Virus record (IMG/VR): IMGVR_UViG_3300042484_002457
Span: 124,001-188,000 of that record
Length of the DNA stretch: 64,000 bases
Reading direction: 5' to 3' (one strand)
Every line of letters begins with the position of its first letter. Position 1 is the stretch's first letter. Below the pieces are notes generated by a model, which was not told the origin of the DNA, made no database searches, and saw only the letters and a list, made by a program, of their open reading frames with translations. The position numbers and the translations under genes are program-made. Of this stretch, positions 1,006 to 58,175 are shown one piece after another.

Positions 1006-1925
1006 AAGAATTATGGGTAGAAAAATATCGTCCCAACACTGTGGATGGTTATGTGTTTGTTGACACTGCGCAACGTGAGCAGGTAACACAGTGGATCCGA
1101 GACGGAAGTATTCCTCACTTGATGTTGAGTGGTAGTGCTGGTACAGGTAAAACAACCCTGGCCAAACTGTTGATCAATGAACTAGGCGTAGACGAATATG
1201 ACGTGATGTACGCCAACGGTTCAAAGGAAGCTCGCAAGGTTGAGTGGGTGGACAAGCTGATCAGCTTTTGTCAAACCATGCCATTTGGTGCATTCAAAGT
1301 GGTGTTGATTGACGAAGCAGACTACATGAATCCCAACTCGGTACAGCCCGCACTACGCAACTTGATGGAAGACTACAGCCAAACTGTGCGGTTTATTCTT
1401 ACTTGTAACTATCCCAACAAGATTATCCCGGCCTTGCACTCACGTTGCCAAGGCTTTCACATCACCAAAACAGATCATACAGAGTTCACTGCTAGAGTGG
1501 CCACTGTGCTGGTGTCAGAAAATGTAGAATTTGATCTGGACACCTTGGATACTTATGTCAAGGCCACTTATCCAGATCTACGCAAGTGTTTGAACTTGGT
1601 ACAACCCAATTCAGTAACTGGAAAACTTGCACCCCCGGGCGAAAGCGATCGTGCTGTTCGAGACTGGAAGCTGGACTGTGTGGATCTGTTCAAACAAGGC
1701 AAGATTCGTGCAGCTCGTACTTTGCTGTGTCAAAGTGCCAGTGCCGAAGAATCAGATGAGATTTTTCGCTGGATGTACGACAACCTTGAACTGTTTGGTA
1801 AAACAGCTGAGCAGCAGGATCAAGCCATTGTGATTATTCGCAACGGCATTGCCAACATTCCCTTGGTCACAGATCAAGAAATCAACCTGAGTGCTACTTT
1901 AATTGAACTTGGCAACATCGCTTGA
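1002..1925 (+). CDS. clamp loader AAA+ subunit (RFC small subunit / T4 gp44-like)
   Basis: LWVEKYRP N-terminal motif, Walker A GSAGTGKT, Walker B VLIDEAD, LHSRC motif; start reassigned to ATG 1002. Confidence 0.95.
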   Translation: MKELWVEKYRPNTVDGYVFVDTAQREQVTQWIRDGSIPHLMLSGSAGTGKTTLAKLLINELGVDEYDVMYANGSKEARKVEWVDKLISFCQTMPFGAFKVVLIDEADYMNPNSVQPALRNLMEDYSQTVRFILTCNYPNKIIPALHSRCQGFHITKTDHTEFTARVATVLVSENVEFDLDTLDTYVKATYPDLRKCLNLVQPNSVTGKLAPPGESDRAVRDWKLDCVDLFKQGKIRAARTLLCQSASAEESDEIFRWMYDNLELFGKTAEQQDQAIVIIRNGIANIPLVTDQEINLSATLIELGNIA

Positions 1926-3024
1926 GCCTGTGATTGATCCCAACAACAGGATCACATTCCTGTTGGATTGGGAACTCACAATGAAATGCAATCTGGATTG
2001 CAGCTATTGTGAAACTGGTATCTACGGTGGTCATGACAACAGCACACGACACCCGCCCAGGGCTGAGTGCTTGAAAACCATAGACTTTATGTTTGAGTAC
2101 GCTGATGCGTACATGAGCACCAAGCCCCAGGGCATTCGATATGTGATCCTGAATGTTTATGGCGGCGAAGCTTTGCACCATCCACACATTGTGGAAATTT
2201 TATCGGTGCTGCGATCTCGTCATGAGCAATACAAACAGCAATGGCATTTAACTGTTACCACAACTACCAATGCCATAATTGCGCCACACCGCTTGGACAA
2301 AATCATTCCTTTGATTGACGAGTTTACAGTAAGTTATCACACTGACAACACTCCTGAACAAAAACATCAATTTCAAGATAACTTGTTAAAAATCAAATCT
2401 GCGGGTGGTAGACTAAAGTGTGTGGTGCTCATGCATTCTGAGCCGGACAAGTTTGCCGATGCGCAAAACATGATTGAATGGCTAAAGAAAAATGATATCA
2501 AACATCTTCCGAGACAATTGGATCATGCAATTGAGCATGATTTCAACTACAATCAACAACAGGTAATTTGGTTTGAAAAACTCTACAACAAATCCCTGGA
2601 TCATGCTGTGGTACGAGACAACAAAATGGACCTGGCTGACACAGGTCGTGCCTGCTGCGGGGGCAGAAGTTTGTGTGCGGATCAAAATCGTCGAGACCCG
2701 CAAAAGTTTGTGTCAAACAAATTCCCAGGTTGGTACTGTAGTGTAAATCATTTCTTTTTGTATATCAAGCAAGTCAACGGCGAAGTCTACGTGAACAAAG
2801 ATTGCAAAATGAATTTTGATGGCACCGTGGGACCAATTGGGCATTTATCAAACACTCAGCCCATGATTGATCAGGCTCAAGATCATGATCGTCCTGTGAT
2901 ACAGTGTGCCAAACAACGCTGCTATTGTGGACTTTGTGCACCCAAGGCAGCAGATCTAGATACATATAACCACATAATGAAAAAATATGAGATACCTAAT
3001 TCTAACCTACGTGACCAGGCCTAA
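1903..3024 (+). CDS. radical SAM protein with Cys-rich C-terminus
   Basis: CNLDCSYC (CxxxCxxC), YGGEA, TTTNA; C-terminal CYCGLC. Confidence 0.85.
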   Translation: MNLATSLEPVIDPNNRITFLLDWELTMKCNLDCSYCETGIYGGHDNSTRHPPRAECLKTIDFMFEYADAYMSTKPQGIRYVILNVYGGEALHHPHIVEILSVLRSRHEQYKQQWHLTVTTTTNAIIAPHRLDKIIPLIDEFTVSYHTDNTPEQKHQFQDNLLKIKSAGGRLKCVVLMHSEPDKFADAQNMIEWLKKNDIKHLPRQLDHAIEHDFNYNQQQVIWFEKLYNKSLDHAVVRDNKMDLADTGRACCGGRSLCADQNRRDPQKFVSNKFPGWYCSVNHFFLYIKQVNGEVYVNKDCKMNFDGTVGPIGHLSNTQPMIDQAQDHDRPVIQCAKQRCYCGLCAPKAADLDTYNHIMKKYEIPNSNLRDQA

Positions 3025-3292
3025 TGGCAAAATTGACGAGCAAATGCAACTGGCTCGAAATATCAAACGCAGAGATTTGCAAACAGGCAATGTTATTCTT
3101 GACTTTCGTGAGCTCAAGGTAGTAAAATCTAGCATGAGTGGGCAACAAGTACCAAAAGATTTTGATCGAATTGTTGCTTACTATTATCAACACTATGCCA
3201 ACACAATAGATCGGCTACTGAAAGAAAATGGATACGAAATTGTCAAATCTGAAGAACCCCAAGCACAACCCGCAGAAACTGATCCTAGTTGA
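2987..3292 (+). CDS. hypothetical protein
   Basis: 101-aa ORF overlapping the upstream gene. Confidence 0.65.
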   Translation: MRYLILTYVTRPNGKIDEQMQLARNIKRRDLQTGNVILDFRELKVVKSSMSGQQVPKDFDRIVAYYYQHYANTIDRLLKENGYEIVKSEEPQAQPAETDPS

Positions 3293-4154
3293 TTAGTTTC
3301 CAACCTTTGTAACTTTTATACAGTCCTTTAACTAGTTTGTATGCTTCGGAGCCACTGCTAAAATTATATGCGGTGGCAAGATCTCCAGTTGTTCCGCAAA
3401 ATGTACCGTGGTTAGGATGAACAAAGTTATATTTGATAGCACGACTTTTTGTAGCATGGCTAATTTTCTTTCTTGATTCTGAGGCCCAAGCATGAGTTTT
3501 AAAACTTTCAGGTCTTTCTAATCTCCTTTGTTTTTGAGACTCTGATAATTTTTGTCGCATATCGTCGGTCCATATACGCTTACTATTAGATTCTCTTATT
3601 TTTTGTTTTTGGTAATCTGATATTGGATGAGACACATTTCCTTTAAGTTTTGCAGAAATTTTTTGTCTTGACTCTATAGTATGTGTTTTTCCATACATTG
3701 GATTATTTGTGCCTGAATTTCTATTAGATATATCAGACTTGAATTGTTTGGCTCGTTCGTCTCCAAATAATTCTTCATACGTCTTGTTTTTTCTGTTTTT
3801 GGATAATTGTTCTTTAGTTTCATTAGACAATGTGTGATGTTCTCCCCCTTTGGAGATATTAGTAAGGATACCACCGTCTTTTCTTCTACCGTATAAATCT
3901 ATTAGATGTGTTTCTCGGTCAATTGCTTCTTCTTTAGTTAACGATTCAAATACAACCTTGACTTCGGGAACTAAGTTTGCAGATAAGATGTTGCTAATTT
4001 CGTTAACTTTTTCTAAATTTACTATTTTAGTTCTAGTCTCCCGTATATGTTCTTTATATCGGAGTTCTGCTGTTCTTGATGTAATCCCTACATAAAAAAC
4101 GGTTTGAGTTAGTGGATTCAAAATCTCATAAACATAAAAAATTTTACTTGACAT
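3285..4154 (-). CDS. GIY-YIG family homing endonuclease with NUMOD3-type repeats
   Basis: FYVYEI...FYVGIT...RYKEH, LTNISKGGE, NPMYGKTHTIESRQKIS repeats; AT-rich and antisense to neighbours. Confidence 0.85.
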   Translation of the reverse strand: MSSKIFYVYEILNPLTQTVFYVGITSRTAELRYKEHIRETRTKIVNLEKVNEISNILSANLVPEVKVVFESLTKEEAIDRETHLIDLYGRRKDGGILTNISKGGEHHTLSNETKEQLSKNRKNKTYEELFGDERAKQFKSDISNRNSGTNNPMYGKTHTIESRQKISAKLKGNVSHPISDYQKQKIRESNSKRIWTDDMRQKLSESQKQRRLERPESFKTHAWASESRKKISHATKSRAIKYNFVHPNHGTFCGTTGDLATAYNFSSGSEAYKLVKGLYKSYKGWKLIN

Positions 4155-5515: not shown

Positions 5516-5669
5516 AGTATTTTCTCCTTTAGTCCTCTCGGACCTGTTATTTACGGGCCTGCGCAACATGATAACACAACATTGATTTAACAACACCTGA
5601 TCACTAAATACTGACCTGGCGGCGTATTCCACAAAAACCCTGCTCTTGGTCAATCGACTAAATATACGC

Positions 5670-6278
5670 ATGGACCGAGAACTCTTTAAAGACCACACTG
5701 ATTACTGGCAAGTTGCTGACAACATCCGCGACATCTACATGAGCGACGGCAGTTTGACCACGCTGTTGGATTTTGAGCGTGTGCTGGACGAAGTTGATAT
5801 CTACGCATTTAAAAACTGGGAAATTGGCGAGCTTGTGGCCGGTCCTGAAATTGGCCGATATCGTGTGAGCTGCACATTTATGTGGCCACTCAAACTCATG
5901 CCCGATCCACGTGGCGGACGCAGACTGTTGAACTACGACTGCGAAATAAGTTATCAACGCAAAGAAATAAAGATTCCTGTAAAGATCACAGACCCCAGTG
6001 ATTATCGCCCTGGCACCAAAAAAGCCAAGTTAATGACACAGGAAGTGTGGCTGGTGGAAATTGTCATGCCCAAGGCCTTGATGAATGATATTCGCACTGG
6101 ATCAATTGAAATGGAAGATGAGGATATTGATCTTGAAGAACTGGATCAGGCCTATGAGCAAGATCTAGATCAGGAAGCCAATCAGAGTGATGAGGCTGCC
6201 GATGATGCACAGGCCAGCCTGGACACACCCAACCCTGGAGGCGCACCAGCTGCTGCGCCAGGACAACCACAGATTTAA
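5670..6278 (+). CDS. hypothetical phage protein with acidic C-terminus
   Basis: ATG 5 nt downstream of TAAATA (5659-5664); 202-aa ORF. Confidence 0.75.
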   Translation: MDRELFKDHTDYWQVADNIRDIYMSDGSLTTLLDFERVLDEVDIYAFKNWEIGELVAGPEIGRYRVSCTFMWPLKLMPDPRGGRRLLNYDCEISYQRKEIKIPVKITDPSDYRPGTKKAKLMTQEVWLVEIVMPKALMNDIRTGSIEMEDEDIDLEELDQAYEQDLDQEANQSDEAADDAQASLDTPNPGGAPAAAPGQPQI

Positions 6279-6280
6279 TC

Positions 6281-6847
6281 ATGAATACTTTTAATCCTTT
6301 TGACCCTGCCCGCCCCTTGCTGCTGGAAGGCCTACAGTACAAAGATCTTGACGGCATCATGAAACCCACAGTGCACGTGGATGAATTTTCTGCCAAACTG
6401 GGCGAAGATGCTGATGTGATTGTACTCAGCTTTTTTGTGCGCGACAAGCAAGCAGCACGTGATCTAATGGGCTGGTTTGAAAAAGGCTATGATTTTGTAC
6501 TAGATGCTGATGTCAGCCCCGGTGAAATCAAGCCTGGCCGGTATCTGGTGTATGTGGAAATTCGTCGCCGCAGCGCAGTACCTCGCCATGTTCAAACCTT
6601 GTTGGATGATCTTTCTACCCTGACAGAATTTGAGCCTGAAGACTGGCAGTTTGTGTATGAGGATGGTGACTTTGGCTGGGACCAGGATGAATTTATCAAA
6701 CGCATTCCACTAACACCCGACGCATATAGAGCCAGAAATGAATCTGATCTAAATGAAATGAGAGCTGCTGCCGGCTTGAAGCCAGTGCAGATTCATACTC
6801 CGCGGAGTGATGTCAAGGCATTAATGGCCGCAGCAGGGATATTGTAA
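6281..6847 (+). CDS. hypothetical phage protein
   Basis: 188-aa ORF coupled to the next gene by TAATG. Confidence 0.75.
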   Translation: MNTFNPFDPARPLLLEGLQYKDLDGIMKPTVHVDEFSAKLGEDADVIVLSFFVRDKQAARDLMGWFEKGYDFVLDADVSPGEIKPGRYLVYVEIRRRSAVPRHVQTLLDDLSTLTEFEPEDWQFVYEDGDFGWDQDEFIKRIPLTPDAYRARNESDLNEMRAAAGLKPVQIHTPRSDVKALMAAAGIL

Positions 6848-9800
6848 TGTTACTAAACCACTTGTTTGAAAACCGCCCCGGGGGCACACTAAACGAATTT
6901 GCACCTGCAGGTGGTGGTGGCAATCGCATGGGTGGTGGTCGTATTGGCGGTGGCGGAGATGACGATGGTGCCGGTGATGATCCCTACAAGTATCCACAGC
7001 CAGACCACTATAGCCGTAGCATAGACTTCTTTGGACGGTTTGAAGCAGATCATTTTGACGACGAAGAGTTTGACAAAGCCACAGGCGAGTTCCGGGGCTA
7101 CTGGGACGATCAAGAGGGCCGTGATCAGATTGCCTATTTCAAGTTTGACAATCCCCGACGCACCGGAGACGACGACCCAGGCATGGGCTGGTACTACGAG
7201 CCACAAAATGAAAGCATGGCAGAAGCACAAACTGAACCTGAGCAGCAACAGATTGATGCTAACCGTCAAGCAGCACTGCGTCGTGAGCGTGAACCTGGTG
7301 GCAGCGAAAAGATTGATGCCCAGCTGGCACAACAAAATGCACAGCGCCAAGAATATGAACGCACTGGCAACTTCTGGCTCAAGCGCAAAGACACACAAGA
7401 ACACATCAGTGATGAGTTTGTGGGCAAAGCTGCCGCAGTGGCTGCTGCACAAGACTTGTTGAAACAACAACCTGATTTGCGTGGCAACATTGTGATCACA
7501 GCATACGGCCCAGGCGAAACTCAGGGTGTGGCGGAAGGCTTCAAGAACATGTACGCAGAGTTCTCTGGATACGGAAACTACATGCAAGGTCGTGCTGTCA
7601 ATGTATTCAACAAAGCTGGCTTGGAGATTGTCAGCAAAGATTACACAGAAGATGATGACATACAAACCTATGTTGTAAAGGGTGACCGCCAAGCTATCGA
7701 AAAAGCCGGCGAGTTCTTGGAACGCAATCCCGAACAGTTTGGCGGATATCACTTTGTCAAGCAAGGTGTGGCGGAAGGCGGATATCCTGAAGTTGACCAT
7801 ATGCCAGGTCCCACTATAAAGAGAACACAGACTGGTTGCAAAAGATGCCACGGCAAGGGCTATGTTTATAAAACACCAGACGGTGAAGTTCATCCTATGA
7901 ATCGTCCAGATGCCAAGAAATACAAATGTGGCAAATGTGATGGTATTGGGTTTGTCAAAGTAGCAGAGCAAGGTGTGGCGGAAGGCTCACAGGATAATGG
8001 AATTAGTTTTCGTGTACAAAAGGGTAAAAATAAATTTGTCACTACCATGACAGTTAATAACGAGCAGGTGGGTGTATACCAATATGATGCTACTACAGGT
8101 CGTAGCATAGCCGAGGTTTATCCAGAATTCAAGGGCAAAGGATTTGGTAAATTATTGGTTTTACATGCTATCTATACCGCGGCCAAATTAGGATTAGATT
8201 TCCAAGAAGATGAATCAAGAACTGCTGAGTATGATAATGTGTTAGACAGTTTGAGTAGCAACAGTTATATTGTAGATGATGATGGATATTGGTACGTTAC
8301 TGGTGAGGGCGAACAATACCTACAACAATCATTAAAACAAGGTGTGGCGGAAGGCAAGAGAATGAAAACTGCCAGCGGCATGTATCGTGACCAGCATACT
8401 GGAGTTGCCTACAGAGGAAAAACAGGACAAGATGGAAACGATAGTTATATGACTCCTGATTACTTGATTCAAAAGTATCAAGAGCGTTTAGCGCAAATTG
8501 CATCAGGTCCATACAAGCGTCCTAAAGAAGTAGCACAACTAAAATCTCGTATTGCTAAACTACAAGGTCAGCAAGGTGTGGCGGAAGGTGCTCCTATTGT
8601 AGTGGCACAGGCTCCTATTCATATTCGCAATCCTAAGAAACAACAAAGTCGTCAAGACAAGCCACTTACAGCATACCAACAAGGTGTTGCAGCACAGGGC
8701 AAGCCATACAAGAATCCGCATCCGTTTGATCCTAAAGCAGGCGCAGATGTGAACTACGACCATAATCAATATCGTGCTGGATATAAGAAGCAAGGTGTGG
8801 CGGAAGGCTCCTTGGAAGAAATAGACCGTAGAGGATTCTTAAAAGGCATGGGTGCAGCGGCAGTAGCAGGCACTGGACTATCACCTATGCCTGCGAAAGC
8901 CTGGTTTTTCTTTATAATACCATTACCTAACACTAACCCAGATGCAGCGGCAAATGCATGCATGCCTCCGACTGTCCAGGTCGGACAACAGGTAAATTTT
9001 CAAAACGAATTACAGGTCATACAAAAAATACACGGAGTCTCTAATAGATGCCAAAATCCAAATATGCCTGTGGCTGTCACTATTGGCAAACCTGAACCCG
9101 TTCAAGCACCAGTAGTAAAAGAACCTCCTAATCAAAAAACACCTCCGAATTACGCATCAAGAATTATAGCTAGAATAAGACCAAACATTCATTATTCTGG
9201 CGACACCTCAGGTAATCCACGTGCAGAAATTGAAGTTCGAGTATCTTCTGATGGTACAATTACCGGAGTAAAATTAGAAAAATCAAGCGGTAACTCAGAG
9301 TGGGACCAGGCTGTAATTGATGCTGTTAAAAAAACCCAAACAATGCCTTTAGATTCTACTGGTAATGTTCCATCTATTATGATAATGGGTTTTAGACCAA
9401 TGGATAATCAATCTTTACAAAGAGAAAGCGTTGACCAAGGTGTGGCGGAAGGCGGTGAGAAAGATCGTCAATGGTCCAACAAAGACATGGAGAGGCTGCG
9501 TGTTGCTACCAGAGACTTTGATGATATAATGGCATCTGATGGACCTGACCAAACCAAGCACGATTTAATTAAGAAGCGAATTCAAACAAAACCAATGGCA
9601 GGTCCTAAAGGCGTATTGCCGGAGGAAGGTGTGGCGGAAGGCGGATACAGCGGTATCGACGATACTGACACCGTGGGCTTTAGCGTCAACAGTGAACGGG
9701 CATACAATGCAGTAATGGCTCGCTTTGGCGACCAGATTGATCATGACGAAACTTCGGGTATTCTGTATGTGCCTGCACGTTTGTGGCCCAAAGTAGAAAT

Positions 9801-10014
9801 GGTAGCTTTTGATGCCGACGGCGAAGGTGCTACACAAACTGATGGCTTGGACGAAGGCGAGAAAGTTGGCAACATGGATGCTGATGCATTTGATGCTGCC
9901 ATGGCCCGCCTTAAAAAGCTAGCAGGCGCAGGACCAATGAAAACAGTTTATGACCCCAACAAACGTGTGTATCGTAATGTGCCCACAGCAGTTCAACCAG
10001 GTACCAAAAAATGA
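6847..10014 (+). CDS. modular polyprotein (putative packaged internal protein) with QGVAEG-linked modules including a CxxCxGxG zinc finger, a GNAT domain, and a Tat signal plus TolA/TonB C-terminal domain
   Basis: 1055-aa ORF; eight Q/E-GVAEG linkers; CKRCHGKG...CGKCDGIG; VYPEFKGKGFGKLL; DRRGFLKG; SSGNSEWDQAVIDAV. Confidence 0.8.
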   Translation: MLLNHLFENRPGGTLNEFAPAGGGGNRMGGGRIGGGGDDDGAGDDPYKYPQPDHYSRSIDFFGRFEADHFDDEEFDKATGEFRGYWDDQEGRDQIAYFKFDNPRRTGDDDPGMGWYYEPQNESMAEAQTEPEQQQIDANRQAALRREREPGGSEKIDAQLAQQNAQRQEYERTGNFWLKRKDTQEHISDEFVGKAAAVAAAQDLLKQQPDLRGNIVITAYGPGETQGVAEGFKNMYAEFSGYGNYMQGRAVNVFNKAGLEIVSKDYTEDDDIQTYVVKGDRQAIEKAGEFLERNPEQFGGYHFVKQGVAEGGYPEVDHMPGPTIKRTQTGCKRCHGKGYVYKTPDGEVHPMNRPDAKKYKCGKCDGIGFVKVAEQGVAEGSQDNGISFRVQKGKNKFVTTMTVNNEQVGVYQYDATTGRSIAEVYPEFKGKGFGKLLVLHAIYTAAKLGLDFQEDESRTAEYDNVLDSLSSNSYIVDDDGYWYVTGEGEQYLQQSLKQGVAEGKRMKTASGMYRDQHTGVAYRGKTGQDGNDSYMTPDYLIQKYQERLAQIASGPYKRPKEVAQLKSRIAKLQGQQGVAEGAPIVVAQAPIHIRNPKKQQSRQDKPLTAYQQGVAAQGKPYKNPHPFDPKAGADVNYDHNQYRAGYKKQGVAEGSLEEIDRRGFLKGMGAAAVAGTGLSPMPAKAWFFFIIPLPNTNPDAAANACMPPTVQVGQQVNFQNELQVIQKIHGVSNRCQNPNMPVAVTIGKPEPVQAPVVKEPPNQKTPPNYASRIIARIRPNIHYSGDTSGNPRAEIEVRVSSDGTITGVKLEKSSGNSEWDQAVIDAVKKTQTMPLDSTGNVPSIMIMGFRPMDNQSLQRESVDQGVAEGGEKDRQWSNKDMERLRVATRDFDDIMASDGPDQTKHDLIKKRIQTKPMAGPKGVLPEEGVAEGGYSGIDDTDTVGFSVNSERAYNAVMARFGDQIDHDETSGILYVPARLWPKVEMVAFDADGEGATQTDGLDEGEKVGNMDADAFDAAMARLKKLAGAGPMKTVYDPNKRVYRNVPTAVQPGTKK
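7522..9642 (+). repeat. eight dispersed in-frame direct repeats, consensus CAAGGTGTGGCGGAAGGC
   Basis: Copies start at 7522, 7762, 7969, 8338, 8572, 8791, 9436 and 9625; 14-nt core GGTGTGGCGGAAGG is invariant; periods 240/207/369/234/219/645/189 nt. Confidence 0.95.
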
Positions 10015-10166: not shown

Positions 10167-10597
10167 GAAATTTTATCAATCTAATAGAAGCAGTGCAATC
10201 TGGTTGCCCACCAGCTACCCAGAGCATTGAATTGAATCTAAAAAATCGTCAAAAAGCCATTGAAGAATACCATTATGGTCCGTTGAATCCCAACGAGCCC
10301 AATCAAGAATACTGGGCTGAATTGGCTGACAAATGGAACACCAATGACATTGAATCAGTCAAAAACAACCGCTGCGGAAATTGTGCTGCATTTGATATCA
10401 CAGACAAAATGCTAGACTGTATTGCCAAAGGCATTGGCTCAGAGCCTGGGTCAGACCCACAAGGCACAATTGATGCTGGCGATTTAGGCTATTGTAAGTT
10501 TTTGAAATTCAAGTGTGCTGCACTGCGCACCTGTGATGCCTGGGTTGAAGGCGGCCCTGTAACAGATAAAAAAGATGAGAGCACAAGAATTCGTTGA
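10163..10597 (+). CDS. Cys-rich hypothetical protein
   Basis: CGNC...GYC...KC...TCDAW; N-terminus MRNFINLIE. Confidence 0.7.
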   Translation: MRNFINLIEAVQSGCPPATQSIELNLKNRQKAIEEYHYGPLNPNEPNQEYWAELADKWNTNDIESVKNNRCGNCAAFDITDKMLDCIAKGIGSEPGSDPQGTIDAGDLGYCKFLKFKCAALRTCDAWVEGGPVTDKKDESTRIR

Positions 10598-10871
10598 AGC
10601 TGATCTGGGTACTAACCCACGTAGAGCAGCCCGACAAGGGTCAAGACCTCCACGCGGGCACAACCCTGTGCCGCGCTATCGTAGTAAAAAAGCCGAGCCT
10701 GACCAGGAACAACTGGACGAGCTGATGTTCATGAACATGAGTCCCTGCAAAACTGACTGCTCGGGACACAGAGCAGGCTACAAATGGAGCAAGGATCGCG
10801 GCGGTGTCAGCACTGCGTCCTGGAGCGACAGCTTTAATCGCGGTGCTGAAATAGCCCGAGCAGGCTATTAA
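10575..10871 (+). CDS. hypothetical protein, putative internal head protein
   Basis: N-terminus MRAQEFVE; CKTDCSGHRAGYKW module after LDE. Confidence 0.7.
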   Translation: MRAQEFVEADLGTNPRRAARQGSRPPRGHNPVPRYRSKKAEPDQEQLDELMFMNMSPCKTDCSGHRAGYKWSKDRGGVSTASWSDSFNRGAEIARAGY

Positions 10872-11692: not shown

Positions 11693-12661
11693 ATGAACCT
11701 CAAAAAATTATTAGCAACATTTGCTGTTGCACTTCCGATGCTAGCATTAGCATTTACACCGCCCAAAGTGGTTAACGTCACTGTGGGATATGCACCCGGA
11801 TCTGGTAACGAAACCTCATTTAGGGGAGTTGCAGCCATTGTAGAAAAAGCCAACCCAAACATCACATTTGTAGTTACAAATCGCCCAGGCGCTGACGAAG
11901 TAGTAGCACTAAACCATTTTATGAAACTGCCTGGTGATGGACACAATCTGTATATTAGTAGTCAGCAAGGGGTTTTTACCACTATCGAACAGTGGTATCC
12001 GGATCAGATCAAATTCAACCCGCTGGACATGGAATTGGTCACAACTATTGCTAAATCTCCATTGGCTGTGATTGCCAATATTGATTCTCCTACTAACACT
12101 CCGCAAGAATTACTAGCACGTCTCAAGAACACTAACAAGCCTATTACATTTGGTCTAGGTGCTGGCGCTCACAAGCTGGTGTTTGAATACTTGATGGATC
12201 GAGGCCAAGGCAACCACAATCAAGTCAAGTCTGTGATGTATCGTGGTCCTGCACAAGCCGCACAGGACGTGGCTGGCAATCAGGTAGAGTTTGGAATCAT
12301 GCCTACAGCAGTGGCCTATGGTCTTTATAAAGCAGGAAAAATCAAGTATATTGCATTAGCATCAGAATTTAAACTGACTCAACTGCCTAACGTGCCACTG
12401 TGGAAAGATTCTGGCATGCCCGGTCTGAACATTTATGGTGCTTGGATGATTGCACTACCACCGGGAACTCCTAAGGAAATAGTAAAGTATTATCAGGACT
12501 TGTTTGTGCCAGCCATTAGATCAGCCGACGCCAAACAGTTTTTTGATTCAAACTTGATGTTTCCGGTACCTGCTGAGCAGAGTCCTGAAGGAGCTCGAAA
12601 GTTCATAATGAGTATTCGAGAAACCTGGATCCCATATGTGAAGAAAATGAAGTTAGATTAA
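11693..12661 (+). CDS. Bug/TctC tripartite tricarboxylate transporter substrate-binding protein
   Basis: Signal peptide; VGYAPGSG, VVTNRPGA, DGHNL, YRGPAQAAQDVAGNQV, LPNVP, PPGTPKEIV. Confidence 0.88.
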   Translation: MNLKKLLATFAVALPMLALAFTPPKVVNVTVGYAPGSGNETSFRGVAAIVEKANPNITFVVTNRPGADEVVALNHFMKLPGDGHNLYISSQQGVFTTIEQWYPDQIKFNPLDMELVTTIAKSPLAVIANIDSPTNTPQELLARLKNTNKPITFGLGAGAHKLVFEYLMDRGQGNHNQVKSVMYRGPAQAAQDVAGNQVEFGIMPTAVAYGLYKAGKIKYIALASEFKLTQLPNVPLWKDSGMPGLNIYGAWMIALPPGTPKEIVKYYQDLFVPAIRSADAKQFFDSNLMFPVPAEQSPEGARKFIMSIRETWIPYVKKMKLD

Positions 12662-16656: not shown

Positions 16657-17451
16657 ATGACACAACGTATTTTAATCATGGGCCTTCCAGGGGCCGGCAA
16701 AACATATCTGGCACAACACATTGTGGACCATTTGCAAGCAGACAAGAAACGAGTGGGTTGGCTCAATGCTGATGATGTACGCAAAAAATACAACGACTGG
16801 GATTTTAGTTCCGAAGGTCGTATCAGACAAAGTCTGCGTATGCGTGAACTTGCAGACGCAATGACTGACTGTGATTACGTAATTTGCGACTTTGTTGCGC
16901 CTTTAGTTGAAATGCGTAATAACTTCAAAGCTGATTGGACTATTTGGGTTGACACTATCGACAAAGGCCGTTACGAAGATACTAACAAAGCCTTTATTCC
17001 ACCTGAAGTTTACGACTTCCGCATCACAGAACAGCATAGCGAAAAGTGGGGTGAATTTGTTGCCGCACATATTTTAGATAATCGTCGCAGACCTGTGTTT
17101 GATTGGCAAAAAGAAACTGTTCAGATGTTAGGGCGTTGGCAACCGTGGCATGCTGGGCATCGTGCGCTGTTTGAACGTGCTATTGCAAAGACAGGACAAG
17201 TTGTTATTCAGATCCGCGACTGTCAAGGTTGGCAGGGCAGTAACCCATTTGAAATTGAAAAAGTCAAATCATTTATTCGCCGTGATTTAGATATGGTTTA
17301 TCAAGGCCAATACGAAATTCAAGTTGTTCCTAATATTGTTAACATCACATATGGGCGTGATGTTGGCTATCGCATAGAGCAAGAAGTCTTTGATGCAGCC
17401 ACCCATGCTATCAGCGCCACACAAATCAGACGAGATCTTGGACTAGCCTAA
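16657..17451 (+). CDS. adenylylsulfate kinase (CysC-like) fused to a cytidylyltransferase-like HxGH domain
   Basis: GLPGAGKT, LNADDVR, DFSSEGRIRQ, DFVAP; C-terminal GRWQPWHAGH. Confidence 0.8.
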   Translation: MTQRILIMGLPGAGKTYLAQHIVDHLQADKKRVGWLNADDVRKKYNDWDFSSEGRIRQSLRMRELADAMTDCDYVICDFVAPLVEMRNNFKADWTIWVDTIDKGRYEDTNKAFIPPEVYDFRITEQHSEKWGEFVAAHILDNRRRPVFDWQKETVQMLGRWQPWHAGHRALFERAIAKTGQVVIQIRDCQGWQGSNPFEIEKVKSFIRRDLDMVYQGQYEIQVVPNIVNITYGRDVGYRIEQEVFDAATHAISATQIRRDLGLA

Positions 17452-17475: not shown

Positions 17476-17943
17476 ATGTGGATTTTGCACTTTCTTCCTG
17501 ACGCTGTAATACTGTGGTTCACCAACCTGTTGCTGTTTGCGGGTGTTGCACTCACAGTGGCTGGATTTTTTATTCATCGAATTCCGTCCCCGTTGATATA
17601 TCAGTATCAATTGCCATTCAAAATAGTAGGCGTTGTTCTGCTGGTACTGGGCGTGTATTTTCGTGGCGGCTATGCTATAGAAATAACCTGGCGCGAGCGT
17701 GTGGCAGAAGTAGAAGCCCAGTTGCGAGTTGCTGAACAACAATCAGCTCAAGAAAACACACGTATAGAAACTCGAGTAGTTAAAAAGACCGAATACATCA
17801 CACGTCGCGGATCAGATATTGTTCAGTATGTTGACCGTGAAATCGTCCGGTATGACACCAAGTTTGCTCCTGGCGGACAGTGTGAAATACCACGAGAATT
17901 TATCAAGGCCCACAATCAGGCCGCTGAGGCACCACCCAAATGA
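17476..17943 (+). CDS. putative inner-membrane spanin (Rz-like)
   Basis: N-terminal TM helices, coiled coil and C-terminal Cys; near endolysin and lipoprotein genes. Confidence 0.55.
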   Translation: MWILHFLPDAVILWFTNLLLFAGVALTVAGFFIHRIPSPLIYQYQLPFKIVGVVLLVLGVYFRGGYAIEITWRERVAEVEAQLRVAEQQSAQENTRIETRVVKKTEYITRRGSDIVQYVDREIVRYDTKFAPGGQCEIPREFIKAHNQAAEAPPK

Positions 17944-19118
17944 AATTCAAAGACTTTCGAACAGAAGAAAAAGTACGCTTGGATCCCAAGTGTTGGACAG
18001 GTAAAAAAATTGGCAACCCCAAGACCAAGGTCAAGGGTGGAGTTAGAGTCAACAACTGTGTGCCCGCTGAATCTGTTGAAGAGGCTGTAAATCCTGCACA
18101 ACAGGCTGCTATTGCTATTGCTAAAAAGAAAAAGAAACAAGGTCTGAAGGAAGGTACAGACAATCCCTACGGATATCGCAAAGGGCAAACTGTAAAACTT
18201 GGCAATGGTCAACAAGGTCGTGTCATTGATATTTTTGATGACAGCATTGAAGTTTTACTAGTTGGCGGCCGAACAGTCACAGTAGACTTCCGTGATGCAC
18301 GGGTAATCGACGAGCAAGGTGTGGCGGAAGATGCTGTGGCAGATTTCTTGGCTCGTGGTGGAGAAATACAAAAAGGCAAGCTACACAAACCACGCAAGGG
18401 TGAAACTTGGCAAGGATCATCACACATTGGTGCAGCAGGCGGAAAAGGTACCAAAGGCACAGTGTCGGGTCGAGCTGCTAACACCAATCCCAAAGGTGGC
18501 AAGCCAGTGGTCAGTGCTGAAGGTTTCAACCCTGAATACAACGACGAAGCAGGCATGGCCGACAACAATCTTGAAACCTTGGAACGTGCTGTGGCAGGTA
18601 TTGACGACCTAATTCAAACCGGTGATAACTTGCCAGAGTGGTGTCAAGAAAAGATCGCAGTGGCCAAGTCAATGTTGGTGGCTGTATGGGACTACATGGA
18701 AAGTGAAGAAGACTCTGAGGAAGTAGATCCTGAAGTGGACGAAATGTTTGAAGCCATGCAAGACCTGGTGTCAGAAATGGCCCAGAAAAATCGTGTGAGT
18801 GAAGATCTAGTGTGGGAACAGTTTGAAGCCATGCCGGATAACGTACTGTACGAAACAGCAGCTTGGCGTCGCAAAGAAGGCAAAAGCGCCAAAGGTGGAC
18901 TCAACGCCAAGGGTGTGGCCAGCTATCGCAGAGAGAATCCTGGTTCAAAACTACAAACAGCAGTCACAACCAAGCCCAGCAAACTCAAGCCAGGATCCAA
19001 AGCAGCCAAGCGCCGTAAATCATTCTGTGCAAGAATGGGCGGAGTCAAAGGACCAATGAAAAAGCCCAATGGCAAGCCCACACGCAAAGCTCTAGCCCTA
19101 CGTAAATGGAACTGCTAA
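17940..19118 (+). CDS. modular polyprotein, putative internal head protein
   Basis: MKFKDFRTE start; short modules bounded by x-x-E sites; QGVAED linker at 18315; basic C-terminal module ...RRKSFCARM...RKWNC. Confidence 0.75.
   Translation: MKFKDFRTEEKVRLDPKCWTGKKIGNPKTKVKGGVRVNNCVPAESVEEAVNPAQQAAIAIAKKKKKQGLKEGTDNPYGYRKGQTVKLGNGQQGRVIDIFDDSIEVLLVGGRTVTVDFRDARVIDEQGVAEDAVADFLARGGEIQKGKLHKPRKGETWQGSSHIGAAGGKGTKGTVSGRAANTNPKGGKPVVSAEGFNPEYNDEAGMADNNLETLERAVAGIDDLIQTGDNLPEWCQEKIAVAKSMLVAVWDYMESEEDSEEVDPEVDEMFEAMQDLVSEMAQKNRVSEDLVWEQFEAMPDNVLYETAAWRRKEGKSAKGGLNAKGVASYRRENPGSKLQTAVTTKPSKLKPGSKAAKRRKSFCARMGGVKGPMKKPNGKPTRKALALRKWNC
18315..18331 (+). repeat. ninth copy of the QGVAE linker repeat
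   Basis: CAAGGTGTGGCGGAAGA, in frame (QGVAED). Confidence 0.9.
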
Positions 19119-21644: not shown

Positions 21645-23909
21645 ATGAATCCCACCGCCGAAATTGAACACATTGTTGAACAATCTGTAGCAATTGCTCA
21701 AACATTTCAACACGAATATGTCACAACCGAGCACCTGCTGCTGGCCATGGTTCGATATGCACCATTTCGAAAAACACTGGAGAATTTTGGTGTAGAAATT
21801 GACATGCTGGATCAAGACCTAACCAGTTATCTGAGTGGGTTACAAAATCTTGTTAAAGAAAATTCAGATCTAACACCCAAAAAGACCACGGCTCTGGAGC
21901 GTATTTTTAATCGTGCCAATGTGCAGGTGATGTTTACCGGGCGTAGACAAATGTCCCTGATTGATGTTTATCTTTCAATCATGGCTGAAGGCCACAGTCA
22001 CGCACAGTACTATCTCATGAGATACGGTGTGAAGAAAGTGGAATTTGTGGAGTTCTGGCAAAAGAACTATTCTGCCCAGGCCAGTGCCACTGGCATGAGT
22101 GTGAATCAAGCCAATGACATTCTCAACGAGTACTGCGTTGATCTCAGTGGTCGTGCTGCCAAGAACGAACTTGAGCCCATGATTGGTCGAGACACTGAAC
22201 TACAGGAAATGGTCACTGTGCTGGCACGACGCTTCAAGGCCAACGTGCTCATGGTAGGCGATCCTGGCGTGGGCAAGACTGCCATCATTGAAGGCCTGGC
22301 CCAGGAAATTCAAGCCGGTCGTGTGCCTGAGTTTCTCAAGGGTCACGAAGTATGGAGTTTGGAAATTGGCTCGCTGCTGGCAGGATCAAAGTATCGTGGT
22401 GATTTTGAGGAAAAGTTCAAGGCCGTGGTGTCAGCACTGGAAGCCAAGAAAAACTGTATCTTGTTTGTGGACGAAGCGCACACCATGAAGGGTGCTGGTG
22501 CAGGATCTAGCTCTAGCCTGGACTTTGCCAACATGCTGAAGCCGGCTATTACCAAGGGCAGTTTAAAAATCATTGCGTCAACCACCTGGGAAGAGTATTA
22601 CGAAAGCTTTGAAAAGGATCGTGCCCTGATGCGACGTTTCTATCGTCTCAGCATTGACGAACCTGATGCTGCGACCACAGAAAAGATTCTTATTGGACTC
22701 AGTCCACGCCTGGAACAGTTCCACAATGTGTTGATTGACACTGAAGCTATTACTGCTGCTGTGGACTTGGCCAATCGCTACATTCATGATCGCAAGAACC
22801 CTGACAAAAGTATTGACTTGATTGATGCTGCTTGTGCTCGGGAACGTGTGAAAGATGCAGGCTTGACAACCATCAACAAAGGCATGATTGAAGAACAGCT
22901 GAGCCGTGTGACCAGTGTGCCTGTAGACAAGTTACAGAACGAGCGCAGTGCCAAGATTGTGGAGCTAGAAGGCAATATCAAGCAACGGCTGTATGGACAG
23001 GATTCAGCTGTGGACACTGTGCTGGAACGTGTGTACATTAACTTTGCTGGTATTGGCAACGAGCGACGCCCCATGGCATCATTCCTGTTCTTGGGCCCCA
23101 CAGGCACAGGCAAAACTGAATTGGCTCGACTGCTGGCCGACAACTTGGACATGAAGCTGTTGAAATATGACATGAGCGAGTTCCAAGAGCGTCACAGTGT
23201 GAGTGGACTTATTGGTGCTCCCCCAGGTTACGTGGGCTTTGAAGACGGCAACATCGGCGGCGGCAAGCTGATTGCAGACATCAGCAAGAATCCTTTTTCA
23301 ATTATCTTGTTTGACGAGATTGAAAAGGCACACCCTGACGTTGCCAACATCATGCTGCAAATGCTAGACGATGGTGTGCTGACCAGTTCAAATGGCAAGA
23401 AAGTCAGCTGCAAGAACACCATTATCATCATGACGTCTAACCTGGGCGCACGTGATAGTGAAAGCAATGCAATTGGCTTTGGATCACAAGAAAAAACTGG
23501 TGAGGACGATCGTGCACTCAAAGAGCACTTCCGCCCCGAACTGCGAAATCGTATTGATGCTATCTGCAAGTTTGGGCGCCTGGACCAACTGGCCATTAAA
23601 AAGATTGTGCTGAAGTTTGTGGCTGAATTGCAAACCAGTCTTGGCAACAAAAACATACGACTCACTGTGACCGAAGCCATGGTAGAACACTTGGCCGAAA
23701 AAGGTTATGATCCCAAGATGGGTGCGAGGCCTCTGGGTCGCAAGATTGACGAGTTACTGCGTGTGCCACTCAGCAAGCGTATCTTGTTTGATCGCCTGGA
23801 CAACTGTGATATCACAGCTGACTTGGTGGAAGGTGGGGTCAAGTTTGATATTGCAACACACGAGACCAGCTTGCTAGACAGTGACGGAATTATTCGTTTC
23901 CCAGCATGA
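21645..23909 (+). CDS. clpA: ATP-dependent Clp protease ATP-binding subunit ClpA
   Basis: Clp N domain (EHLLLA), GDPGVGKT, LFVDEAH, GPTGTGKTE, GAPPGYVG, FDEIEKAHP, MGARPL. Confidence 0.95.
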   Translation: MNPTAEIEHIVEQSVAIAQTFQHEYVTTEHLLLAMVRYAPFRKTLENFGVEIDMLDQDLTSYLSGLQNLVKENSDLTPKKTTALERIFNRANVQVMFTGRRQMSLIDVYLSIMAEGHSHAQYYLMRYGVKKVEFVEFWQKNYSAQASATGMSVNQANDILNEYCVDLSGRAAKNELEPMIGRDTELQEMVTVLARRFKANVLMVGDPGVGKTAIIEGLAQEIQAGRVPEFLKGHEVWSLEIGSLLAGSKYRGDFEEKFKAVVSALEAKKNCILFVDEAHTMKGAGAGSSSSLDFANMLKPAITKGSLKIIASTTWEEYYESFEKDRALMRRFYRLSIDEPDAATTEKILIGLSPRLEQFHNVLIDTEAITAAVDLANRYIHDRKNPDKSIDLIDAACARERVKDAGLTTINKGMIEEQLSRVTSVPVDKLQNERSAKIVELEGNIKQRLYGQDSAVDTVLERVYINFAGIGNERRPMASFLFLGPTGTGKTELARLLADNLDMKLLKYDMSEFQERHSVSGLIGAPPGYVGFEDGNIGGGKLIADISKNPFSIILFDEIEKAHPDVANIMLQMLDDGVLTSSNGKKVSCKNTIIIMTSNLGARDSESNAIGFGSQEKTGEDDRALKEHFRPELRNRIDAICKFGRLDQLAIKKIVLKFVAELQTSLGNKNIRLTVTEAMVEHLAEKGYDPKMGARPLGRKIDELLRVPLSKRILFDRLDNCDITADLVEGGVKFDIATHETSLLDSDGIIRFPA

Positions 23910-24547
23910 CACTAGTATACCAACCACAGCCAAGAGACCGACTCTACTACGATCAGTATCAGTACTGCTTGACTTTTCAGCTCAGTCATTCTGGTCGCAG
24001 TCGCAGCCTGGACCCTGAAAAGATTCGCTCAGCTATTCATTTTGCCAATCTTTTGAAGTGGACCAATTCAAAAATCAGTGATGAACAAGAGAAAAATTTA
24101 CTAGAGTGCGCCAAAATATTTAGAGAATGTAACCAGCCACACAAACGAATTGTGTATGCCAACTGGCAGTATGTTTATACCAATCATGAAAGTCTACTGG
24201 CACAATTGCACAGTCTTGACTTTGTAAAACATTCCAAACTCACTGAAGCCGCAGTGACTCTGCCCCGGGATGTGGTAGTGCTTAAAAACAGCCAGTATCA
24301 GTTTAGAAGCTATTTCAGCAGTCGCTGGTTCAATCGAGAAGAAGTTGCTGCAATAAAGAACTTTCTGGTAAGCCGTGGCACTCAGTTTAGAACCACACTT
24401 GGTGTTCAGTCTCGATTAAATGGCCGATTCTTTTATCCCAACGACTGGATGTTTGTGGATCACAATGACGAAAAAGATGCATTGTTGCTCAATCTTGTAG
24501 CAAGTCAGTGTATTAGAAAAACGCTGCCCATACAGATTGCTAAATAA
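23906..24547 (+). CDS. hypothetical protein
   Basis: 213-aa ORF with ATGA overlap. Confidence 0.7.
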   Translation: MTLVYQPQPRDRLYYDQYQYCLTFQLSHSGRSRSLDPEKIRSAIHFANLLKWTNSKISDEQEKNLLECAKIFRECNQPHKRIVYANWQYVYTNHESLLAQLHSLDFVKHSKLTEAAVTLPRDVVVLKNSQYQFRSYFSSRWFNREEVAAIKNFLVSRGTQFRTTLGVQSRLNGRFFYPNDWMFVDHNDEKDALLLNLVASQCIRKTLPIQIAK

Positions 24548-32476: not shown

Positions 32477-33462
32477 TGAGAGCACAAGAATTTGTAACAG
32501 AACTGTTTGAGCCAGGCAAAAAGTGGCAGTGGAGTTTTACTGGCAGTGAAGAAGCAGTAGCAGTATTTCATGTTGGTGAAGTGCCTTACATGTTCCATGC
32601 ATATGGCGCCGTCGGTGAATGGGAAGCAGAGTTCAAGCGGTATGGTAACAAACTAGATCGATCGCAAAAGTTTGGACTAACTGGCACTGGTAACTCAGCA
32701 GAAGTCATGAGCACAGTGGTTGACATCATGCGAGCGTTCTTGGAAAAATACAAGGACAAGATACAAGTGCTGACATTCAGTGCCAAGGAAGATTCCCGTC
32801 AGGGTCTATATGCCCGAATGGTCAAACGACTGCTGCCCGACTGGACCATGAAACAATCCGGTGAGCACTTTGTTCTTGTGGCTCCCAAACAAGATGTCAC
32901 AGAAACATGGGGTGTTGAAAAGTATCCTATTCCGCTGCCAATTGGGCAGTACCTTGCTGTTGGTAGTGATGAGTTTGCTCCGCCGGGCAACTATGCCAGT
33001 GCAGACGATCTTGTGGATGATGTGTACGACTTGATAGATGCAGGTGTTGAGCCCACAGTGGTTGCAGTTGATCCCAAGACTCTGTTGGCCACACAAGACT
33101 GGCTTAGTAACGAAGGCGGCGGCGATCCCTTGTTTGACGAGTACCCGGACAAGCCTGTGATATACAAGAAGGCAGGCAAGCTGTACATCCTTGACGGGCA
33201 TCACAGAACCACACGAGCTTGGAAAGCTGGTAGACCTATTTCAGTATACCTGTTTGGGGACGATCAACAAAACGAACTGGACGAAAACTTTGCAGATGGC
33301 CGAAACCCACAAGACAAAGGTGATTCAAAGCGTCACGGTATCAATACCAAAGCATCAGTTAGTAGTCTACGCAAAACTGCCAAACAAGGCGGCCGCAAAG
33401 GACAACTGGCACACTGGCTGGCTAACATGAAGTCTGGTAGAGCAAAGGCCAAACGAAAATGA
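32476..33462 (+). CDS. modular putative internal protein with a ParB/Srx-like module
   Basis: MRAQEFVTE start; ATQDWL...YILDGHHR; basic terminal module after LDE. Confidence 0.7.
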   Translation: MRAQEFVTELFEPGKKWQWSFTGSEEAVAVFHVGEVPYMFHAYGAVGEWEAEFKRYGNKLDRSQKFGLTGTGNSAEVMSTVVDIMRAFLEKYKDKIQVLTFSAKEDSRQGLYARMVKRLLPDWTMKQSGEHFVLVAPKQDVTETWGVEKYPIPLPIGQYLAVGSDEFAPPGNYASADDLVDDVYDLIDAGVEPTVVAVDPKTLLATQDWLSNEGGGDPLFDEYPDKPVIYKKAGKLYILDGHHRTTRAWKAGRPISVYLFGDDQQNELDENFADGRNPQDKGDSKRHGINTKASVSSLRKTAKQGGRKGQLAHWLANMKSGRAKAKRK

Positions 33463-39241: not shown

Positions 39242-39544
39242 ATGCAAGCTGAATTTATTATTGCCGTGGTAGATGTTTATTGCAAATGGACTGGCGAGCA
39301 CCCACGCTATCGCTGCTATGTTAATGATGAGCTATTTGCCGAGCGCACATGGATATGGCACAACGAGTACCTTGAAGAAGAATTTCAAATTCAAGCGCCA
39401 CCAGGTAACTATAAAATCAGATACGAGCTGGTTGATCCAGCCAATGCCAAGTTAAAAATTCGCAATGTTAGAGTGTGTGTGGGTCCAGCAGTGGTAGACC
39501 CAAATGGCATAGTTCAAATATACACGCCGGAGAAACCACAATGA
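39242..39544 (+). CDS. hypothetical protein
   Basis: ATG 5 nt after TAAATA (39231-39236). Confidence 0.65.
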   Translation: MQAEFIIAVVDVYCKWTGEHPRYRCYVNDELFAERTWIWHNEYLEEEFQIQAPPGNYKIRYELVDPANAKLKIRNVRVCVGPAVVDPNGIVQIYTPEKPQ

Positions 39545-39744
39545 GACTGCGGGAAATTACTGAAAACGTCAGCACTGTAGCAGGATCTTTTGCTCCAGTC
39601 GTTATGCCCATGGGCACTGTGTCAAGAAACGGCGGAGGCTTGCTTTCAGGTAAATATACAACTGATCCTACGCCTAACACGCCCAAGGAATACAAAAGGA
39701 ACAAAAATGCTCGCGGACGCTTTAAAAACTCTCCTGGCAACTGA
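39541..39744 (+). CDS. small putative internal protein
   Basis: MRLREITE start; GGAG upstream. Confidence 0.6.
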   Translation: MRLREITENVSTVAGSFAPVVMPMGTVSRNGGGLLSGKYTTDPTPNTPKEYKRNKNARGRFKNSPGN

Positions 39745-55677: not shown

Positions 55678-55678
55678 T

Positions 55679-56380: not shown

Positions 56381-56422
56381 ATTTATCTAACTAAATATAA
56401 TTTCAATCAAGATGATACACTA

Positions 56423-58094: not shown

Positions 58095-58106
58095 ATAGTT
58101 CTTTAC

Positions 58107-58170: not shown

Positions 58171-58175
58171 ATAAC

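Follow-up and report, generated by a model that had tools for sequence, protein, structure and literature searches.

The analysed window of 64,000 nucleotides (positions 124,001 to 188,000 of the 209.5-kb IMG/VR contig IMGVR_UViG_3300042484_002457) contains a forward open reading frame at 6847-10014 that encodes a protein of 1055 residues composed of nine modules, and its ATG overlaps the stop codon of the upstream gene. The two genes immediately upstream (5646-6278 and 6281-6847, both forward) share an operon with it and belong to families annotated as virion structural proteins (phrog_12928 and phrog_13138); the PA5oct homologue, gp189, is marked ESI-MS/MS in its record. PA5oct shares local synteny, with PhoH followed by two virion proteins and ClpA further on, but its gene at the position of the polyprotein encodes an unrelated J-domain protein. 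The identical 1055-residue protein is present in at least five independent metagenome assemblies, and it is therefore not an assembly artefact. Searches of INPHARED with 10 kb of the DNA (megablast) and with the polyprotein (tblastn) gave no match, and no cultured relative carries it.

The nine modules are separated by eight (Q/E)GVAEG linkers, at 7522-7539, 7762-7779, 7969-7986, 8338-8355, 8572-8589, 8791-8808, 9436-9453 and 9625-9642. Module 7 lies between the two QGVAEG linkers at 8791-8808 (CAAGGTGTGGCGGAAGGC) and 9436-9453, and spans 8806-9450 (215 residues, 654-868 of the protein); the context ESV(D/E)QGVAE of the second of these linkers is kept in relatives. The preliminary description had placed at 8791-9453 an internal twin-arginine signal, a small two-Cys domain, a Pro-rich linker and a TolA/TonB C-terminal-like domain, and this observation is confirmed, with the coordinates exact.

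The predicted Tat signal peptide occupies module residues 1-32 (8806-8901), with an n-region GSLEEID, Arg-Arg at 8827-8832, a Gly/Ala-rich hydrophobic region of 16 residues, and A-K-A at 8893-8901 followed by a tryptophan. The motif D-R-R-G-F-L-K at 8824-8844 departs from the (S/T)-R-R-x-F-L-K consensus only in the residue preceding the arginines. The NCBIfam model TIGR01409 scores 23.3 bits against a cut-off of 16.7, whereas Pfam PF10518 scores 21.8 bits, just under its cut-off of 22.7; the relatives L016, L053 and L125 pass the Pfam threshold. The signal starts at residue 654 of 1055 and not at the N-terminus of the translated protein. As the preliminary description had stated, there is no in-frame ATG between the linker and the arginine pair.

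Behind the signal lie a small, confidently predicted beta domain (8953-9090) bracketed by Cys52 and Cys82 of the module, with an AlphaFold2 pLDDT of about 85, and a Pro-rich spacer (9091-9135) of low pLDDT. Both cysteines are kept in the relatives P0002-P0004, and P0007, which starts inside the domain, keeps the second. The beta domain has no significant fold match; the best PDB hit is the TolA-binding N-terminal domain of a filamentous-phage pIII, but at E=0.92 and with neither sequence nor viral-structure support, and we regard it as a lead only. A lipoprotein reading of the module was rejected, because A-N-A-C is not a lipobox and relatives differ at that position.

The C-terminal domain of the module (9136-9423) is TolA domain III-like, with the order alpha-beta-beta-alpha-beta-alpha. 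Pfam TonB_2 (PF13103) matches at 66.8 bits (E=1.9e-18, cut-off 22), TonB_C at 27.6 bits and TolA (PF06519) at 23.8 bits (cut-off 25), and NCBIfam tonB_Cterm scores 38.2 bits against a cut-off of 27.1; the P. aeruginosa TolA-III sequences 1lr0 and 6s3w are matched in the PDB at E=1e-6. The AlphaFold model has pLDDT above 90 over residues 116-206, and its four best Foldseek hits are the TolA-III structures 6s3w, 1lr0, 2x9a and 3qdp, with TonB C-terminal domains following and further TolA-III entries among them. The closest cellular relatives are genuine TolA proteins encoded in tolQ-tolR-tolA operons of Limnohabitans and other Comamonadaceae. The module is not a full-length TolA: the equivalog model TIGR02794 (tolA_full) scores 47 bits against a cut-off of 59.45 with only the C-terminal 70 profile positions matching, and there is no membrane anchor, helical domain or tol neighbour, all of which are present in the Limnohabitans homologue. 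Other modules of the protein include a DnaJ-type zinc finger and a GNAT-like domain.

The linker is a specific, conserved element. All eight encode G-V-A-E as GGT GTG GCG GAA, although elsewhere in the reading frame GCG makes up 6% of Ala codons and GTG 20% of Val codons, giving a chance of 0.0027 per linker. The linker 14-mer occurs eight times exactly in this reading frame and a ninth copy, with one mismatch, lies in another; about 0.4 matches are expected by chance at up to two mismatches. A second linker-bearing reading frame of the window (17940-19118, forward) has Q-G-V-A-E followed by D at 18315-18329, the N-terminus MKFKDFRTEE, and a DUF6321 C-terminus. The linker 17-mer is found in more than 120 IMG/VR contigs, and 195 of 197 copies of the 14-mer lie in open frames of at least 100 residues in the GVAE frame; in loci retrieved by the Tat leader rather than by the linker, five of six GVAE linkers use the same 12 bases. 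In a logo of 336 sites, for which G-V-A-E was fixed by the search pattern, Q occurs at P5 in 74% and G at P1' in 73%. At least 303 mosaic proteins share single modules with this protein, and in 120 proteins found through module homology the tetrapeptides are GVAE (252), GISE (28), GVTE (15), GMAE (15) and GIAE (11). Relatives add deaminase, NTase (nucleotidyltransferase), NUDIX and ParB domains. Single-linkage clustering of the modules collapsed into one giant cluster and was not used. Literature searches for the linker peptide, the leader peptides, phage polyproteins and phage TolA found nothing describing this arrangement.

We collected 16 distinct Tat leaders of this type, of which nine lie within 8 residues behind a G-[VLM]-x-E linker and four lie within 13 residues of an initiator methionine. 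They sit directly behind the linker in the window and in the relatives L053, L098, L123, L126, L127, P0003, P0005 and P0014, and at true N-termini in P0004, P0006, L016 and L034; the leader DNA is nearly identical in L053, L126 and L127. Nearly identical leaders precede at least six other cargoes, one of which is a GH19 peptidoglycan hydrolase, whose substrate is periplasmic. The Tat leader was not inherited from TolA but is a portable phage leader. The linker behaves like an N-terminus generator, and a free-standing gene of 98 residues in the window (10575-10871, forward), with the leader MRAQEFVEADL, has a cargo homologous to a module that follows a QGVAEG linker in P0004.

The preliminary description went on to infer that cleavage at VAE or LEE exposes the internal signal, that the module is exported to the periplasm as a Tol/Ton decoy in superinfection exclusion or envelope manipulation, and that this is the best internal evidence for processing of the polyprotein. 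This interpretation is partly supported. The anatomy is right, and the central inference, that the linker is a cleavage point which turns an internal Tat signal into an N-terminal one, gains strong comparative support from the leaders described above; the domain, however, is TolA domain III rather than generically TolA/TonB. What the analysis shows is the module architecture, the domain identity, the conservation of the linker and the portability of the leader, together with a precursor encoded as a single reading frame that is reproducible across assemblies; cleavage, the responsible protease, Tat-dependent export, TolB binding and a role as Tol decoy or in superinfection exclusion are all inferred.

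The explanation that we favor, which we consider somewhat more likely than not, is that module 7 is one cassette of a cassette polyprotein of an uncultured jumbo myovirus-like phage whose host is probably a freshwater member of the Comamonadaceae. In this view the 1055-residue precursor is made as one chain, and a phage protease that cuts after Glu in a hydrophobic-x-Glu motif cleaves each (Q/E)GVAEG linker after the Glu (at 8805/8806 for module 7) and possibly also after L-E-E (8812-8820). V-A-E is present in eight of eight linkers, and the specificity would be that of the T4 gp21 prohead protease at the internal-protein site I-A-E, although this is a motif match only. If this occurs, a protein of about 23 kDa is released with the Tat signal at its N-terminus, and because Tat accepts finished, folded proteins it could export a fragment that was never a nascent chain; leader peptidase would then cut after A-K-A. 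A strongly hydrophobic stretch (WFFFIIPLP) follows this site, however, and the signal may therefore stay uncleaved as a membrane anchor. In the periplasm the product would be a TolA domain III without the membrane anchor or helical domain II, and should occupy the N-terminus of TolB and any other ligand of TolA-III without coupling it to the TolQR motor. TolA-III binds the TolB N-terminus, g3p and colicin A (PMC7391070), and the inferred result would be a dominant-negative block of Tol-Pal, with outer-membrane destabilisation, impaired constriction and exclusion of Tol-dependent invaders; we note that the affinity of TolA-III for TolB is low (Kd 40-200 uM; PMC7391070) and a decoy would need high copy number. 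The identical linker DNA most likely also serves as a short homology handle for shuffling cassettes between phages.

Processing might occur in the prohead, with subsequent injection alongside the DNA as for the T4 internal proteins, or in the cytoplasm of the producing cell. We weakly favor the former because of the flanking virion-protein genes and the N-terminal leaders in this phage group that resemble the T4 capsid targeting sequence (CTS), MKTYQEFIAE, next to which the T4 internal proteins are cut. Neighbouring and related reading frames start with MRAQEFVxE, and a strict pattern for such CTS-like N-termini is matched by 64 of 1121 reading frames in the linker loci and by 0 of 996 in bacterial loci, but the N-terminus of the polyprotein itself (MLLNHLFEN) resembles the T4 CTS only loosely. 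The leader MRAxEF also heads a Tat-GH19 hydrolase, which would be an odd protein to inject at the start of infection, and it need not mean capsid targeting; moreover, in many other phages the linker-bearing genes lie beside replication genes and not head genes. No major capsid protein or prohead protease was recognised in the window or in about 30 kb of additional flank, a search that leaves out about 100 kb of the contig; about 20 kb upstream holds a baseplate-like gene, a GLEYA gene and large unknown genes followed by auxiliary metabolic genes, and about 10 kb downstream holds 7-deazaguanine-type genes. The ATPase at 21645-23909, which PHROGs labels an ATP-dependent protease, is ClpA-like and an unfoldase rather than a site-specific protease.

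Several other explanations can be envisaged, although each seems unlikely. The protein could be an uncleaved, beads-on-a-string protein of the polyvalent type, in which the linkers are only flexible joints and recombination junctions and the internal Tat-like segment is inert, a relic, or a membrane hairpin; the failure to find a protease in the sequence read and the DNA-level identity of the linkers fit this view, and polyvalent proteins with many fused effector domains are well documented (PMC5512222). However, the G-V-A-E peptide is conserved far beyond what a spacer needs, the arginine pair and the leader are invariant in all internal copies and always abut the linker, the same cargoes exist as free genes, and an internal Tat signal has no known function. 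The least likely of the alternatives is that the cassette is translated from an internal start, with GGAAGG in the linker acting as a Shine-Dalgarno-like site 4 nt before a TTG at 8812; modules 2 and 5 do have an ATG 10 and 7 nt after their linkers. But the TTG is TTA in L053, L126 and L127 and CTA in L123, which argues against independent translation, modules 3, 4, 8 and 9 have no start codon near their linkers, and this reading does not explain the conserved Val-Ala-Glu peptide.

It is also possible, though doubtful, that the polyprotein is a virion ejection protein that reaches the periplasm directly from the tail, with TolA-III helping the phage to cross the envelope, for example by docking on TolB-Pal, and the Tat motif playing no part. 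The flanking genes of annotated virion families and the use of the Tol system as an entry route by filamentous phages and colicins are consistent with this, but it explains neither the conservation and portability of a Tat leader among unrelated cargoes nor its position at a true N-terminus in relatives. Similarly doubtful is the possibility that processing and export occur as proposed but that the target is the Ton system, the domain binding TonB boxes of outer-membrane transporters and blocking TonB-dependent uptake or TonB-dependent phages. The TonB_C and tonB_Cterm models also match, TonB C-terminal domains are the next fold matches, and TolA-III-TolB and TonB-TonB-box complexes are structurally alike (PMC7391070); nonetheless, the best sequence, profile and fold matches are all TolA, and the closest cellular relatives lie in tolQRA operons.

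The arrangement has parallels in several described systems. Like the T4 internal proteins (IPI, IPII, IPIII and Alt), the modules are small, highly variable cargoes, thought to be delivered to the next host, with a putative cleavage site after Glu and short N-terminal leaders in this phage group that resemble those of T4; they differ in that many cargoes are strung into one chain with a repeated internal site rather than encoded by one gene each, no gp21-like gene was found within the sequence read, capsid packaging is conjectural here, and no T4 internal protein is known to carry an export signal. Polyvalent proteins of phages and conjugative elements (Iyer et al. 2017, PMC5512222) similarly combine many unrelated small effector domains and are proposed to be delivered with the DNA and cut into units, but that paper invokes embedded metallopeptidase domains and mentions no linker, signal peptide, TolA or TonB. 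Here a fixed six-residue linker with fixed DNA separates the units, no peptidase family was found in any module, and among 120 relatives only one carries a peptidase-type accession (PF10463, Peptidase_U49). In the SPN3US/phiKZ-like giant phages, ejection and inner-body proteins are cut at several sites by the prohead protease, and SPN3US gp245 cuts after A-X-E and cuts an ejection protein at three or more sites; those cuts remove propeptides and are not described as releasing a series of independent domains, and there is no sequence relationship. In the known exploitation of TolA-III by g3p/pIII and group A colicins, a phage or toxin protein binds host TolA-III, whereas here the phage encodes a domain of the same fold and family, detached from domains I and II and fitted with a predicted Tat signal. 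The PeSL mobile cassettes of T4-type phages (PMC2839356, PMC4122927) are also short conserved DNA motifs at gene boundaries that are proposed to mediate modular shuffling, but they are intergenic promoter-terminator motifs, while the linker is coding, in frame, and also specifies a peptide.

More tentatively, these proteins may represent a widespread, undescribed class of phage cassette polyproteins, in which arrays of small effector modules are joined by an 18-nt element that is at once a protease site, a generator of new N-termini and a DNA homology handle for cassette exchange, and in which some cassettes carry a portable Tat leader and a fragment released by proteolysis, possibly after injection from the capsid, would then be re-routed by the host's own Tat system to the periplasm, where this module would deliver a motor-less copy of the host's TolA tip to disable Tol-Pal. 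This would be the first case of proteolysis-activated Tat signals in a virus, and of a phage using TolA-III as a decoy.

In practical terms the linker is a ready marker that can be used to find and delimit hundreds of unannotated phage effector domains in metagenomes. If the linkers are cleaved, this is a compact way for a phage to make, and perhaps package with a single targeting signal, a whole set of small host-directed proteins, and the fixed linker DNA would explain how such sets are reshuffled so quickly between phages. The internal Tat leaders would show that export signals can be kept silent inside a precursor and switched on by proteolysis, and that Tat is the route of choice for a protein that is already finished. 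A phage-made, soluble or loosely anchored TolA domain III would be a natural dominant-negative probe of Tol-Pal in freshwater Betaproteobacteria, and a new kind of envelope manipulation or exclusion factor.

The window is part of a 209.5-kb viral metagenome contig whose family-B DNA polymerase is closest, at 43-52% identity, to those of jumbo myoviruses such as Phosso, Atu_ph07 and GAP32. ORF 6847-10014 encodes 1055 residues and contains eight copies of the linker (Q/E)GVAEG, which divide it into nine modules of 63-230 residues. The observation made in the preliminary description holds, with the feature running exactly from one linker to the next, and the module between them is 8806-9450. Other genes of the window include a GIY-YIG/NUMOD3 homing endonuclease (3285-4154, minus strand), a radical SAM protein (1903-3024), an APS kinase (16657-17451), and a block at 54153-61533 with epimerase, aminotransferase, GTP cyclohydrolase I, Rieske, PTPS and B12-radical-SAM genes, possibly for nucleotide-sugar and 7-deazaguanine-type DNA modification.

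Residues 1-32 of the module form a predicted Tat signal, with D-R-R-G-F-L-K followed by a Gly/Ala-rich core and then A-K-A|W; the NCBIfam Tat model scores 23.3 bits against a cut-off of 16.7, while the Pfam model falls 0.9 bit short of its own. Residues about 50-95 form a small predicted beta domain (window 8953-9090) bracketed by two conserved Cys residues, and this is followed by a Pro-rich spacer. The best PDB fold match of the two-Cys domain is the TolA-binding N-terminal domain of a filamentous-phage pIII (4g7x_A, 4g7w), and although this match is not significant (E=0.92, TM 0.48), the module would, if it is real, pair a TolA binder with a TolA-III. Residues 111-206 form a TolA domain III, as indicated by Pfam TonB_2 (E=1.9e-18), by PDB TolA-III sequences that match at E=1e-6, and by an AlphaFold model with pLDDT above 90, for which the four best Foldseek hits are all TolA-III structures, with TonB C-terminal domains next.

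In a search of 5.8 billion proteins the closest cellular relatives are TolA proteins (51-55% identity), and in reference genomes they map to Limnohabitans, Hydrogenophaga and other Comamonadaceae (50-62% identity). In Limnohabitans planktonicus the homologue sits behind tolQ and passes the TolA equivalog model. The phage copy lacks the membrane anchor and helical domain of TolA, and it is therefore a TolA-III domain and not a TolA. We note that the phage also encodes a TctC/Bug-family periplasmic binding protein with a Sec signal peptide (11693-12661); this family is greatly expanded in Burkholderiales, which fits the Comamonadaceae affinity of the TolA-III domain.

All eight linkers are encoded GGT GTG GCG GAA, even though GCG supplies only 6% of the Ala codons and GTG 20% of the Val codons in the rest of the ORF, and the chance per linker is 0.0027. 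The 17-mer hits more than 120 IMG/VR contigs, and in these contigs 195 of 197 copies of the 14-mer lie in open frames of at least 100 aa, read as GVAE. In loci retrieved through the Tat leader rather than through the linker, 5 of 6 GVAE linkers use the same 12 bases. At the protein level the site is [K/E]-Q-G-V-A-E-G, with the variants GISE, GVTE, GMAE and GIAE. The peptide is thus under selection and the DNA is also kept uniform, which we interpret as a short homology handle for cassette exchange; the nearest precedent is the PeSL motif of T4-type phages.

A search with the whole polyprotein identified at least 303 mosaic proteins of 580-1450 residues, each of which shares only one or two modules with the query, at 75-98% identity. 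Their other modules include deaminase, nucleotidyltransferase, NUDIX, ParB-like and GIY-YIG domains, and all are unnamed metagenome proteins. The most widely shared cassette is the GNAT-like module 4 (7984-8352), which occurs in 93 of 119 related mosaic proteins at about 75-88% identity, in N-terminal, internal and C-terminal positions. The C-terminal tail of module 9 (9640-10014), of about 45 residues (...KKLAGAGPMKTVYDPNKRVYRNVPTAVQP...), ends at least 8 of 120 related polyproteins as well as the polyprotein of viral locus L126, and may be a shared anchoring or targeting element. A second ORF of the window, 17940-19118, carries the same linker DNA (QGVAE|D at 18315-18329) together with a degenerate linker QGLKEG, the N-terminus MKFKDFRTEE and a DUF6321 C-terminal domain that recurs at the end of many linker-bearing proteins (for example the related protein P0003 and those of loci L053 and L123).

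Several comparisons suggest that the linker is cut. Tat leaders with nearly the same peptide and DNA sit directly behind linkers in front of unrelated cargoes (loci L053, L098/L127, L123 and L126) and in front of other TolA-III versions (proteins P0003, P0005 and P0014), and the same leader sits at a true N-terminus in free-standing genes (P0004, P0006, L016 and L034), such that 13 of 16 distinct leaders are at a native or linker-defined N-terminus. Two of the free-standing genes, L016:3861-4484 and L034:6264-6878 (both on the minus strand), combine an MRAxEF-type leader, a Tat signal and a GH19 (chitinase class I / lysozyme-like) domain; these would be wall hydrolases routed to the periplasm by Tat rather than by a holin or a Sec-type signal anchor, and together with TolA-III they make two cargoes whose partners are periplasmic. 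Window ORF 10575-10871 is likewise a free-standing copy of a cargo that follows a QGVAEG linker in P0004.

The proposed site VAE| resembles IAE|, at which the T4 prohead protease trims the internal proteins next to their capsid targeting sequence MKTYQEFIAE, and the head protease of another giant phage cuts after A-X-E several times within one ejection protein. ORFs in the linker-bearing loci often start with MRAxEF(I/V)xE or similar, and a strict pattern matches 64 of 1121 such ORFs but 0 of 996 ORFs in bacterial control loci; in the window, ORFs 10575-10871, 32476-33462 and 39541-39744 start with MRAQEFVE, MRAQEFVTE and MRLREITEN, respectively, leaders that resemble the T4 capsid targeting sequence. 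In addition, the two genes upstream of the polyprotein, one of which overlaps its start, belong to families annotated as virion structural proteins, and the homologue in Pseudomonas phage PA5oct is marked as detected by mass spectrometry.

While the anatomy of the module is confirmed, cleavage, export and binding are inferences, and the interpretation offered in the preliminary description, that cleavage exposes the signal and the module is exported as a Tol/Ton decoy, is supported in part. No protease was found in the window or in about 30 kb walked beyond it, and no head genes were recognized there. The 754-aa ClpA/ClpB-like double AAA+ ATPase at 21645-23909, which PHROGs calls an ATP-dependent protease and which is syntenic with the ClpA-like gene of PA5oct, is not a site-specific protease, and the next gene (23906-24547) had no PHROG match at E <= 1e-4. 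The polyprotein's own N-terminus only loosely resembles a capsid targeting sequence, the MRAxEF leader also heads the Tat-GH19 hydrolases, which are hard to picture as injected proteins, and in many other phages the linker-bearing genes lie next to the polymerase, clamp and ssDNA-binding genes. Processing in the cytoplasm of the producing cell is therefore as open as processing in the prohead. Independent translation of the module from an internal start is unlikely, as the only candidate start codon, TTG at 8812, is TTA or CTA in relatives, and half of the modules have no start codon near their linker.

The polyprotein would work like the T4 internal proteins and like the polyvalent proteins of Iyer et al., although it cannot be counted as either, in that there is no embedded peptidase, in that there is one chain with repeated sites rather than one gene per protein, and in that its packaging is only inferred. 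We found no description in the literature of the linker, the leaders, an internal Tat signal in a phage precursor, or a phage-encoded TolA-III.

We favor, with moderate confidence overall, a mechanism in which a phage protease cuts after the Glu of each linker, so that the released module starts with a Tat signal and, because Tat handles finished proteins, is exported. Linker cleavage seems likely and Tat export somewhat less so, whereas Tol-Pal as the target is a tentative assignment, and capsid packaging and injection are possible but more doubtful still. Export of TolA-III alone to the E. coli periplasm is reported to give a tol-like, leaky and colicin-tolerant phenotype (Levengood-Freyermuth et al., J Bacteriol 1993). 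In this view, a TolA-III without a motor connection would compete for the TolB N-terminus and other TolA-III ligands, and would thereby disable Tol-Pal.
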